Of a DNA stretch of 64,000 nucleotides, positions 43,570 to 48,106 are shown piece by piece. Each line of letters begins with the position of its first letter. Position 1 is the first letter of the stretch. This DNA comes from Oikopleura dioica (lineage: Eukaryota > Animalia > Chordata). Where the stretch lies: assembly GCA_907165135.1 (NCBI GenBank), contig OU015569.1, positions 7,998,001-8,062,000 on the forward strand, read 5' to 3'. The notes under the pieces are model-generated. The model did not search any database and had not been told where the DNA came from. It worked only from the letters and a program-made list of their open reading frames with translations. A program made the translations under genes and the position numbers.

Positions 43570-43976
43570 ATGGCCTCAAGTGCTTCATTGTATGCGTTGA
43601 ATGCAGTTAAGGTAAGATGCGAAATAAAACTAAGATTTACGAGTCTTTCAGAACACTAAAATCGGCGAGCCCATTCCAGATGAGTCGATGCAGGCGCTTA
43701 CTACGCAGCGTAAGAATGGTGCAGGATTCACTGACCGGTTAGTAGAGCAGTTTCAAAATTAAAAATTCGAAAATAGAATCAACGTGTTTTTAACGTCTGA
43801 ATTAGCAGATTGACAAGTTATCTAAGATTGACCCTAATCAGAGGGTCACAATACTATTGAGTGTCATTTCATCTTTCAGATTAAAGACTTCAATTTCGTC
43901 TTTCTTCGCTTTCGAAAATCCACTTTCTGCTACTGTCGCTGAAGTAAACACTGCCGGGTTGACCCCCCATCTTTAG
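43570..43976 (+). CDS. Small three-exon uncharacterised gene, may have further 5' exons
   Basis: Two GT-AG introns (43612-43651, 43738-43879) splice in frame: MASSASLYALNAVKNTKIGEPIPDESMQ..AGLTPHL. Confidence 0.4.
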
Positions 43977-44305
43977 GGTTCCGACTGGTACCGTGGTATT
44001 CTTATATGAACTTATATAAAATCTCATATTCAAATACATATTGGTATATGTATTTTCTATGCAACCCTGTATATCTCATATATGGAGACCATATTTCGAT
44101 AAATTCTTGGTTTTGACACGGTACGGACCCGACCTCGCTCTTTCTAACTCCTTTACTTTCTTCTTTTCATTACTTTCATTTATTACTCTATCAAAACTAA
44201 ATTGATTTAAAGCGCCGAGACTCGGGGCATAATAAACCTTAGTGCTGATGACTTTTGCGATCTGGAGCAAGTTGACATTATTGAAATATTTTGTGTTGCA
44301 GGTTT

Positions 44306-47300
44306 TTAAAGGCAGGATTTCACAGTATTTATAAGTGGGAACGGTCCATTTCCACAGAAGTCGCCATACATATCGTCGAGAGAAGTATCCCAGAACATAG
44401 CACCTGCTAGTCCATGTTCTTTTATCCAGTCGCAGCGTTGCGCTAAAGTTGCTTCGTTTTCATAACCGACCCATTGCTAAAGTGATCGATCAATTTCTGT
44501 TAACGTGAGTTCAACTTACTGTAGAGCTGTAGGCATACATGGAAGACGTAGATGTATCTTGAACAGCGGTCCATCCGTTGTTTGCAATATTGTCACAGAT
44601 CTCATAGTAAGCAAGGAAACCTGCTGTCTTTGTGTAGGTGCCAGCGGTACCTGCTCCGGAAGTTGGCGATCCTGGAGTGTTACTTGAACCAGAGAGGGTA
44701 AAAGACTTGCCGTAAGCAGGCAGGCCAAAAACTAATTTTGAAGCCGGGCAGCCACCATCCATCCAGTACTGCGCTGCGTAACGAGTAGATAGAACGTCAC
44801 CTGCTGGATCGCTAGCGTGGCCATCGAACTGACTGTGCCCGAAAGCTTGATTCTCCCAGCTTCCATGTAAATCATAAGCCATAAGATGAATGTAATCCAG
44901 AGCAGCAGAAATGCGTGGAATATCATAAGCCGTGTCTATTGTCGATTTTCCAGCAGCAACGGCAGCGGTGAGTAAGAGCCGCTCTTTCCCAGTATTAATT
45001 GCCTCTGCTTCGAATGCAAGACGAAGTTCCTCGCAAAGAAGAGCAAATCTTTCTTATTTTGGGATAAACATCGTCATTGTCGTTTAAAAATCATTGCGAT
45101 TTTAATTCATAACAATTCTAATTTGAAATTGCGAAAAGTATCCCTTTCCTTTGTCGATAGCTGGCGATCCTCGGTTCGCTGGATATTCCCAATCTAGATC
45201 AAGTCCGTCAAAGTTGTATTGCCTTAAATAGGAAATAGAGTTTGCGATGAATTCGTCTCTATTGGCTTTTGTCGATACCATCGCCGAGAAAGTTGCTGTG
45301 CCGTGTGTCCAACCGCCAACAGCGAGAGTCATCTTGAGTGTTGGATTTTGGTTTTTTAATTGTGCCATTGACGCGTACAGCTGCTCATCATTCCACTCAT
45401 ATGGAGCAAGGTCATTCTGGCCTTCAGGGATTTTAGCGAATGAGTAAACCAAGTGAGTACAGAGGTCTGCTGGTATATCCTGGGGTTTTTGTTGAACACT
45501 TGAAGGGGTTCGATACTGGGCCCAGTTCGTAAAATAACAAACGAGAACGCGATCAGATGAATTTGGTGTAGTGGTTGTTGTGCTCTGAGAAGAAGAAGTA
45601 GATGATGATTGGGATGTTGTAGAAGATGTTGGGACAGTTGTAGAAGTTGTCGAGCCGGAGCTTGTAGTGCTGGAACCCAAAGTTGTAGTAGTTGATGGTG
45701 GGTTTGTTGGCGTGCTGTTACAGTCTACATTCTGTGGCCAGTCGCAGAGTGAAAGGGCGGGGTTAAACATGAGACCAGACGAACAAGTTTTAATGAAAGT
45801 TGAGCCAGCAAAGCACTGATAAAATAATTATCTGATGGCCCTCCTTGGGATATTTTCCTCGGCCCCGGGTAAATTAGGATGAGGCAAAGGATAAATCTAT
45901 TACCGAATTATTTGATTCGTATTACCTGGTAAAACTTGCTACAATCTGGATGAGGATAAAGACTGTCGTCTTTATCGACGCAGAAATTAGGGTCTTCAGT
46001 TCCACCACCGCCGCCGCCGGCAGAGCTTGTTGTTGTTGAGCTTCCAGGAGATGTTGCAGGTGATGTTGCAGTTGTAGAAGTAGCGGTTGTCTCTGTTCCA
46101 GGGCATTTCACATTAATAGCCCAGTCGCAAACATTGTATACTTGATTAAAAAGAAGTCCTGATGGACACGTTTTAATCGCAGTTGACCCTCGATTGTAGC
46201 ACTGGTAAAATTTATCGCATTCAGGATGCGTGTACCTAAAAAAGTAAAATATAAAACAATTCATCCGCAAAAAACATTACAGTCCGTCTTTCTTTCCAGA
46301 GCAAAAATTTGGGTCTTCTGAAACTGGTGCACCAGCAGTCGTTGTTGTCGTTGACTAGAAAAATATTACGAAAATGAAAATATATAGAATCCGAAAGGTC
46401 AGTAAATTCTCACCAGAAAGAATAACGCAAGTTTCATTGATAAAATTCAATTTCTCTTAGGAGAATAATCATTTTACCACTGTTATATATCATGGCCCAA
46501 GCTTATAATTTCGAGTCGCCTTATAAAACTACACTGCCGTAAAATCACTCAAATAAAAGATGACGTGAAATCTAATCCAATAATATTATTAAGAGAATCT
46601 TACCGGCGCAATAGTCGACGTTGTAGTTGTATTGAATTCACCAAAATTAAAGTTGTTTTCCAAAAGACATGACATATCTTCATGTTTGCCAGGCAAATAG
46701 AAAACTCTGTAAGGTGGAAGCAGTGCTCGTGATGCTCCGGAAACAACGAAGAGAATCGGGTAAGATTCTCCTGCTGCAATTCCTGTATTCCAAGGCCAGT
46801 TCGTCAGCGTCGCTATTTGACTATTTGCGGAAACTGTTAGCTGGGCTTCCCAAGTGTGGAATTCAACATTCTTGTCAAGTGGCTCGAAGAAGTAGAAAAC
46901 CACCGTCCATTCGTTCAGATTGATTTCTGGCTTTAGGCGAAGTAGGAGTTGGAATCCAGTAGGCCATTCCTTTTTCACTAGCACATATTTCTTCTTATTT
47001 AGATTGTAAGTGTCAGGGCATGGATTCTGGCAGCTAAACGGACTATCTGCCTCCCACAAACCGGATCCTCGACACTGAATTCCTGTTCTTGATTTCCAGT
47101 CAGGAACTGACGGATCTTCAAAGACCATCTCATACGTTTCTGGACAAGTCAGAAAGCAATACGAAAGTTTCTCGCCGAGGTGACCATTTGGCGACTCTGT
47201 GCAACCAGTGGGATTTTTATCGGTCGTTTGAGGACTCATGTCGAGAATGGCGTTTGGAAACTGCTCTTGCCATGAACCACACTTTTGTCCTTCTGCAAGG

Positions 47301-48106
47301 GTCGTTGGCTCTTCTGTAGTTATTGGAGGCGGGGTGAAAGTTACTGAAGAATCGTCAGGAGTTATTTGGATATCGGCGCAATTCATGAACTCTTCTTGAT
47401 ACCCTTTTCCAAGTCCGCAATCGTCTGGCGCGTCGCAACCCCAACTATTGCCTGCATGGTATCTCCAACGAAGGACACATCGATCACATTGAATATCATC
47501 CGGTAACTTGACCAAAATGTCGTACCAGTAGCCGCCATTGTTATAATTACTATTGTGGGTGTCTGGCAAATCCCATTCATATCCTGAAGTTTTATAGTCG
47601 ACTCAAGTTTCTTATTGTTCAATACCTTGATCGGTCTCGAGTGGATGTGCAGAGAGACAATCTTCAAGTGCGTCTTGGCCACTGCCAAGTTCTTCAAGGG
47701 GGCAAAGATTGAATTTTATCCAGCCCTTGTGGTGGGCAGTAATCTGCACTTGTGTAATAATTGTGCTTCCGGATGAATATTGCCCAGAGACGATCTTCTT
47801 ACCATACTTACCACCATCTTCATGTAATCGAGGCTGGCTGGCTCCATAAGGATCGCCACATGGCCCACATTTATATCCCTGGCTTATTTGATAGCTAACA
47901 CCGCCGCAGTTTGAGCCCATGTCATTGTAGTTTGCTTCGATAACGCTACTGTACGGCGCCAATAGTGGATTTGTGTTGATGAAACGGAAAAGAGATCCTC
48001 GTCCGGGTGGATCCATAAGACGACCATGCCCGTACACAGCCGGAATAATTGCTGAAAAGATATTAGCTTAATCTCCTTGACTCTCTGTTATACCTAATCC
48101 TTTCAT
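44306..48106 (-). CDS. Secreted multimodular enzyme: AA15 LPMO, sushi-like module, CBM2-like module, 2x chitin-binding type 2 (CBM14), GH18 chitinase
   Basis: Short signal then mature N-terminal [28 protein letters not shown] and [10 protein letters not shown] (AA15). Two C..C..C..CPxGLxFN...CDW CBM14 units. GH18 [36 protein letters not shown]. Introns linking the modules are GT-AG and in frame. Confidence 0.93.

Follow-up and report, generated by a model that had tools for sequence, protein, structure and literature searches.

A likely single-chain LPMO-chitinase with a putative internal start in Oikopleura dioica

A 64,000-nucleotide stretch of Oikopleura dioica DNA (contig OU015569.1, positions 7,998,001 to 8,062,000; hereafter the window) raises the question of whether one gene, XSR.g15641 of assembly OKI2018_I69, joins an oxidative and a hydrolytic polysaccharide-degrading domain in a single protein, and which polysaccharide such a protein would act on. 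The gene lies on the minus strand in the X-specific region and has eight exons (48106-44306; Table 1). It likely encodes one secreted, multi-modular chitin-degrading enzyme. An earlier note, made from the window sequence, had described the locus as a fusion of an AA15 lytic polysaccharide monooxygenase (LPMO) with a GH18 chitinase, and the coordinates it gave are the exact coding sequence of the annotated gene. Its observation was confirmed and its interpretation is partly supported.

Exon boundaries were first read by eye from the window sequence. All eight exon translations were found verbatim in a deposited protein (P0296 = CAG5098407.1, Oidioi.mRNA.OKI2018_I69.XSR.g15641.t1), and the concatenated model, with a main product of 1,057 amino acids (aa), is identical to it. 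An alternative model is identical to a second deposited isoform (P0297 = CAG5098408.1, t2). The annotation of this assembly was made by AUGUSTUS with RNA-seq intron and transcript hints (PMC8008620). The seven introns are short; six are GT..AG and one is GA..AG, a boundary forced by homology, as the residues DKERF are contiguous in Atlantic-type genomic DNA (contig L010), in an orthologous mRNA (contig L016), and in P0296. Contigs from metatranscriptome X1 match the LPMO and GH18 exons with 95-99% identity and confirm two introns.

In an orthologue, the LPMO and GH18 are encoded on one mature mRNA. Logan contig L016 (3,290 nt) is a spliced, polyadenylated transcript of the Atlantic lineage, and its full-length product (P0289) is also 1,057 aa, with the same architecture and both domains together. 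The contig includes a library adapter, ~20 nt of 5' untranslated region (UTR), the exon 1-2 splice, and an AATAAA signal with a poly(A) tail. All introns seen in genomic contig L010 have been removed from it, the 238-nt linker intron among them. The presence of both domains on one transcript, which the earlier note had named beforehand as decisive, is borne out by this mRNA. The junction between the two halves is also continuous in relatives. A more distant appendicularian (L013/P0017) has the last CBM2 strands, the linker, the CBM14 modules, and most of the GH18 in one open frame, and five further sequences (P0135, P0143, P0158, P0178, and P0138) run from CBM2 to CBM14 without a break. A paralogue in the same genome (L023) has no intron at this junction.

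The predicted protein has a short signal peptide, an AA15 LPMO, a CCP/sushi-like module, a CBM2, two CBM14 modules, and a GH18, in that order. Pfam scans were run on the exons separately and on P0296. LPMO_10 spans residues 13-218 and the whole profile is covered (1.8e-15, 58.5 bits; on P0296:1-240). The family was not reported by Pfam on the full 1,057-aa P0296. The Ser/Thr-rich linkers probably lower the score of the whole protein, and the missed domain probably explains the database name of "chitinase." The only solved structure matching the LPMO domain is TdAA15A from Thermobia domestica (5MSZ, 2.4e-33). His13 corresponds to position 1 of the LPMO_10 profile and directly follows a 12-residue hydrophobic leader that is conserved in L016. 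The second His of AHH (His112) pairs with His91 of 5MSZ, and Phe212 of QEEF, at the axial position, with Tyr184. A predicted mature N-terminal His, a second brace His, and an axial Tyr or Phe, the sequence features of AA15, are all present, and the domain is predicted to be copper-dependent and oxidative. GH18 covers residues 692-1035 (profile positions 2-317 of 317, 6.6e-93 on the whole protein), and its catalytic motif DGLDLDWE is found at residues 804-811. Two six-Cys CBM_14 modules (PF01607) were identified (3.3e-25 on the whole protein). Both catalytic centers, the His brace and DxxDxDxE, are intact by sequence, and the chain has three or four modules that bind carbohydrate. The earlier note had listed this domain order, both intact centers, and the axial Phe, and each agrees with the Pfam matches, predicted folds, and alignment to 5MSZ.

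Table 1. Positions of coding, intronic, and putative regulatory features of XSR.g15641 in the window, with equivalents of the alternative first exon in other lineages
Feature	Window position	Strand	Remarks
Start codon	48106-48104	-	ATG
Exon 1	48094-48106	-	ATG and first 4 1/3 signal peptide codons (MKGL-); conserved in L010; same splice in mRNA contig L016; matches P0296
Exon 2	47626-48051	-	End of signal peptide and N-terminal part of AA15; Pfam LPMO_10 and 5MSZ alignment; X1 contig covers 47650-47833
His13	48028-48026	-	Putative first copper ligand
His112	47731-47729	-	Second brace His
Exon 3	46604-47583	-	C-terminal part of AA15 (to 47357), CCP/sushi-like module, CBM2, Thr-rich linker
Phe212	47389-47387	-	Axial position
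CCP/sushi-like module	47284-47021	-	Within exon 3; predicted fold
CBM2	47020-46637	-	Within exon 3; profile match and predicted fold
Trp353	46966-46964	-	CBM2
Trp391	46852-46850	-	CBM2
Trp411	46792-46790	-	CBM2
Linker intron	46355-46603	-	249 nt, GTAAGA..TAG, phase 0; unusually long, partly conserved; homologous intron spliced out in L016
TATA box	46483-46489	-	TATATAA; putative internal promoter; 46 nt 5' of the alternative ATG; core invariant in four lineages
Alternative first coding exon	46414-46437	-	MKLALFFL; GTGAGA donor, phase 0; N-terminus of deposited P0297
Exon 4	46281-46354	-	Thr-rich linker and start of CBM14 no. 1; in-frame stop just upstream of acceptor
CBM14 no. 1	46306-46100	-	Across exons 4-5
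Exon 5	45926-46235	-	Rest of CBM14 no. 1, Thr/Ser/Gly linker, start of CBM14 no. 2; Pfam CBM_14 1.2e-12
CBM14 no. 2	45982-45720	-	Across exons 5-6
Intron	45925-45816	-	Confirmed by X1 contig joint
Exon 6	45149-45815	-	End of CBM14 no. 2, long Ser/Thr linker, N-terminal part of GH18; Pfam
DGLDLDWE	45209-45186	-	Within exon 6
Non-canonical intron	45053-45148	-	GA..AG, 96 nt
Exon 7	44520-45052	-	Middle part of GH18; Pfam 3.1e-36; covered by X1 contigs
Intron	44519-44477	-	Confirmed by X1 contig joint
Exon 8	44306-44476	-	C-terminal part of GH18 and TAA stop (ends at 44306); Pfam
Mini-exon, window (Okinawa)			MKLALFFL
Mini-exon, L010			MKIPLLFI
Mini-exon, L014			MKIKFLAALASHAMSR
Mini-exon, L015			MKIKFLVALASHAMSR

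We propose that cleavage of the 12-residue signal peptide would expose His13 as the N-terminal copper ligand. The carbohydrate-binding modules would dock the chain on crystalline chitin, the LPMO would nick the crystal surface oxidatively, and the tethered GH18 would hydrolyze the loosened chains, giving LPMO-chitinase synergy within one molecule. The CCP/sushi-like module may act as a spacer, with Thr-rich linkers between modules, and a second promoter in the linker intron would yield a chitinase-only isoform with a signal peptide, two CBM14 modules, and GH18. Sequence data show the gene structure, the domain identities, the catalytic residues, one fused mRNA in the sister lineage, and a conserved internal start; the substrate, the synergy, the tissue, and any activity of the internal promoter are inferred. 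LPMO-GH18 synergy was measured for TdAA15A (Sabbadin et al. 2018, Nat Commun 9:756, PMC5823890), and an axial Phe has been associated with specificity for chitin among AA15s (PMC8393829). A 2026 preprint reports that perioral and giant Eisen oikoplast cells express chitin synthase, and that chitinase is induced in the gut after tailshift (10.64898/2026.03.31.715263). Because the preprint places chitin synthase in oikoplasts and chitinase induction in the gut, house remodeling and digestion are both possible roles.

Several points weigh against a single secreted, chitin-degrading enzyme. The putative signal peptide is very short (12 aa). The assignment of chitin as substrate rests on analogy, and the CBM2 could point to cellulose instead. 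Finally, no read or contig bridging 46604|46354 was found for the Okinawa lineage in one read-mapping search of metatranscriptome X1 and three bulk oligo-dT RNA runs with the same species label (X7-X9). Support for a fused product in Okinawa animals comes from the deposited t1, a hint-based model, and from the orthologue mRNA and homology.

The CBM2 was identified by profile and by fold. CBM_2 (PF00553) matches residues 349-431 with 32.5-34.7 bits (cut-off 24), and with 28.8 bits when the whole protein is used. An AlphaFold model of residues 238-473, built from 21 homologues, had a predicted local distance difference test (pLDDT) score of 86.6. Within its CBM2 part, values were mostly 94-97 per 10-residue block, and 88 and 78 at the edges. 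The best Foldseek matches for the CBM2 model were 6QFS, 3NDY_E, 2RTT, 1EXG, and 2CWR, with template modeling (TM) scores of 0.60-0.66 by target. Among the matches are cellulose-binding modules of Cex (6QFS and 1EXG), Clostridium cellulovorans EngD (3NDY_E), and, lower in the list, ScLPMO10C (6F7E). Chitin-binding modules of Streptomyces Chi18aC (2RTT) and Pyrococcus (2CWR), and also 2CZN and 5DHD, have similar scores. When the module is aligned with Cex 1EXG, its three surface Trp residues (Trp353, Trp391, and Trp411) fall on W17, W54, and W72, the binding-face residues of that cellulose-binding CBM2a. The module is a genuine CBM2, and by sequence and fold its ligand could be cellulose or chitin. 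A resemblance to CBM2 or CBM49 had been suggested; the former holds above the Pfam cut-off and in the fold, and Pfam gave no match to CBM49.

The module preceding it, first described as sushi-like, is so at the fold level only. No match to the Pfam Sushi profile was found on residues 240-345 at E <= 1. When modeled alone, residues 238-339 (pLDDT of 87.1) matched only CCP/sushi modules, with a best Foldseek E value of 0.012, and all 50 VIA rows were CCP modules (Z of 3.7-5.9, 60-72 residues aligned). Scores in both searches are modest. Six Cys and one Trp are conserved in 11 homologues.

The main alternative concerns the substrate. The protein could be a dual-substrate machine in which the CBM2 attaches to cellulose made by the animal itself, in its house or pre-house, and the CBM14 and GH18 act on chitin, with an LPMO that may oxidize cellulose too. 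We regard this as rather unlikely, and give similarly little credence to the related proposals of an enzyme that remodels a composite of cellulose and chitin in the house or sits immobilized on the cellulose filter. All three Trp aligned with the Cex triad are kept, cellulose-binding modules are among the best fold matches, and the same genome has a CBM2 fused to a GH9 cellulase (L008). TdAA15A is active on both cellulose and chitin (PMC5823890), and the oikoplastic expression of chitin synthase in the preprint cited above means that the house may hold chitin beside cellulose. However, chitin-binding CBM2s score about equally, the CBM2 of the GH9 protein shares just 26% identity with this one over 90 residues, the axial Phe is the residue of AA15s reported as chitin-specific, and the two CBM14 modules and GH18 are directed at chitin. 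Dual targeting of cellulose and chitin, the interpretation given in the earlier note, is only one possibility and was overstated. In a more specific form, the chitin-attacking LPMO/GH18 pair would be tethered by the CBM2 to self-made cellulose of the house filters or pre-house, and the internal promoter would switch between this tethered form and a free chitinase-only form. We consider this improbable; if true, the secreted cellulose device would carry an enzyme coat that can be programmed, or the animal would have a means of remodeling a house built of chitin and cellulose.

A second alternative is that the fused model is a prediction artifact and the Okinawa lineage has two genes. One would code for AA15-CCP-CBM2 and end in VRFS*, and the other would start at 46437 and code for a signal peptide, two CBM14 modules, and GH18. 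The linker intron between the CBM2 linker and CBM14 no. 1 is long for the O. dioica genome. The frame on the CBM2 side stops four codons past the 46604 donor, and a stop also occurs soon after the donor in L010 and L011. Exon 4, with an in-frame stop directly 5' of its acceptor, requires an upstream exon. A TATA box and a signal-peptide mini-exon are conserved, the first ~125 nt past the donor are conserved in a manner resembling a 3' UTR, and bridging reads were missing as described above. Against this, the orthologue mRNA splices exactly the homologous intron. Five lineages retain a phase-0 GT donor, although the C-terminal tails that would follow it vary (VRFS, VRFL, VSDLMK, VGLIVQF, and TV). 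A protein would hardly be expected to end in a Thr-rich linker, a single exon spans the junction in the ancestral state (L013 and L023), and the deposited t1 was built with RNA-seq hints. Two separate genes are highly improbable, and as the sole state were rejected based on the L016 splicing and the single-frame junction in relatives; the second product was retained as an extra isoform.

Runs X7-X9 had zero reads on the gene. Coding DNA is only about 74% identical between cryptic lineages. Reads from these runs that map nearby (window 43800-44140) match at only 90-95% and have long unmatched ends; they are probably the transcript of a neighboring gene from another cryptic lineage. Because the runs come from another, divergent lineage, the absence of reads is uninformative on expression.

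Intron content differs considerably between lineages. L010 lacks four of the seven window introns and has one (L010 4588-4631) that is missing from the window. In L011, a close relative of L013, the linker frame stops (TV*) and is followed by AATAAA and tandem ~30-nt repeats (L011 2100-2505), whereas L013 continues into CBM14 (680-720). The break in L011 may reflect the insertion of an element, the gain of an intron, or truncation of a paralogue.

The third alternative, a non-enzymatic matrix protein or lectin whose two catalytic domains are inactive and whose modules cross-link chitin and cellulose fibers of the house or the lining of the gut, is scarcely credible: the same genome does have non-catalytic CCP-CBM2(-CBM14) relatives (L024 and L025), but all tested catalytic residues are intact and conserved across lineages that share just 40-87% protein identity, and the GH18 matches its full profile.

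The extra isoform would come from a putative second start within the same gene. The deposited t2 (592 aa) consists of the MKLALFFL signal peptide, two CBM14 modules, and GH18. Its first coding exon reads ATG AAA CTT GCG TTA TTC TTT CTG and is followed by GTGAGA. Three other lineages have equivalent mini-exons, whose phase-0 GT donors lie 50-100 nt ahead of the same acceptor. Each is preceded by a TATA box, and the TATA core and ATGAAA are invariant in a four-way alignment. These sequence features probably mark an internal promoter from which a secreted, chitinase-only enzyme is also made. Neither the promoter nor the alternative first exon had been recognized in the earlier note. The first ~125 nt of the linker intron (46479-46603) are ~80% identical to Atlantic-type L010, above the flanking coding DNA (~74%). 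This conserved stretch could be a control element for splicing or the promoter, or an alternative 3' end.

The core fusion is already known. Sabbadin et al. (PMC5823890) state that fusions of AA15 with GH18 exist in Chlorophyta, diatoms, and tunicates and that CBM14 is present on every AA15 of O. dioica; the O. dioica models in their Supplementary Data match only the AA15 HMM. The earlier note was right about tunicate AA15-GH18 fusions. The AA15-CBM14-GH18 models of O. dioica noted in that study correspond to XSR.g15641 or its orthologue, which is most likely the tunicate fusion that the study mentions. Fused models from the Bergen strain (CBY09167.1 / E4XC42_OIKDI and others, 1,036-1,037 aa) are orthologous to XSR.g15641 and were deposited before the study, which makes it misleading to say, as the earlier note did, that this gene adds modules to the known fusion. 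UniProt names the protein "chitinase" only. The text and legend of PMC5823890 were found to mention neither the CCP-like module nor the CBM2, and not the internal start either. We searched the literature and found no paper mentioning these three features for XSR.g15641, and none joining AA15 with Oikopleura, oikosin with cellulose-binding, or, in a relevant way, Oikopleura with CBM2.

Among protein databases, GH18 and CBM2 were absent from long AA15 representatives (508-2,159 aa), and within the best 150 representatives the combination of AA15 and CBM2 was found only in appendicularian-looking sequences. One sequence, P0001, is 87% identical to exon 3. The full-length fusion was not among the representatives listed in an exon 3 word search or an all-library search; full-length proteins were found as cluster members. 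Contig look-ups for P0138 and P0297 gave no record.

Comparison with characterized systems shows which parts are shared. TdAA15A and TdAA15B of T. domestica have the His brace, an Ala two residues before the second His, and QEE[YF]xNCADI in common with the O. dioica LPMO. The insect enzymes are single-domain, whereas the O. dioica protein has five further modules, and TdAA15A, which acts on cellulose and chitin, has an axial Tyr where O. dioica has Phe. In bacteria, CBM2 is found on an LPMO (ScLPMO10C, AA10-CBM2, 6F7E) or on a GH18 (Streptomyces Chi18aC, CBM2-GH18, 2RTT), with fold TM of 0.61-0.63 by target. There, the oxidase (AA10) and hydrolase (GH18) are separate proteins, while in O. dioica an animal AA15 and a GH18 are combined in a single chain that also includes CBM14 and CCP modules of eukaryotic type. 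The vertebrate enzymes acidic mammalian chitinase and chitotriosidase have a GH18 that is 45-56% identical to that of O. dioica over the aligned part, and also have CBM14, but this is C-terminal and they lack LPMO, CBM2, and CCP. The CBM2-GH9 protein of the same genome likewise joins a CBM2 with the Trp triad to a polysaccharide hydrolase, but it is a cellulase rather than a chitinase and its CBM2 is N-terminal.

What is added here is annotation detail and a testable isoform hypothesis, and these additions are modest: the CBM2 and CCP assignments, the conserved internal promoter, and a tri-catalytic paralogue. Natural single-chain fusions of an LPMO and a glycoside hydrolase are rare and of interest for enzyme synergy and biomass conversion. 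This one is found in a chordate. It includes a further module for binding crystalline polysaccharide (CBM2), has a paralogue with three catalytic domains, and probably can also yield the hydrolase alone. The gene also bears on the presence of chitin beside cellulose in larvacean houses or gut linings.

Related loci were identified elsewhere in the genome. The paralogue L023 (3910-8600; C4:1958909-1963599, plus strand) has AA15, a CCP-like module, CBM2, CBM14 modules, and GH18, and its open frame continues into a second GH18. DGLDLDWE is found in each of the two GH18 domains, giving one oxidase and two hydrolases per chain. Two loci on the minus strand have the CCP-like and CBM2 cassette, either with a terminal CBM14 (L024 5128-6211; C5:4383127-4384210) or alone (L025 5195-6166; C5:3960194-3961165). 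AA15 and GH18 were not found by tblastn within the fetched loci, and the products may be non-catalytic matrix or house proteins. The metagenomic sequences P0138 and P0158 look like orthologues of these two. The GH9 gene (L008 6020-7744, minus strand; C4:13488019-13489743) encodes a signal peptide, CBM2, an acidic linker, and a GH9 endoglucanase. Tandem single-exon AA15-CBM14 genes are found in L007 (6960-7991 and 8507-8812; C5:9574959-9576811), the first of which encodes 343 aa, with the leader MKLFASTLVASALG before His1.

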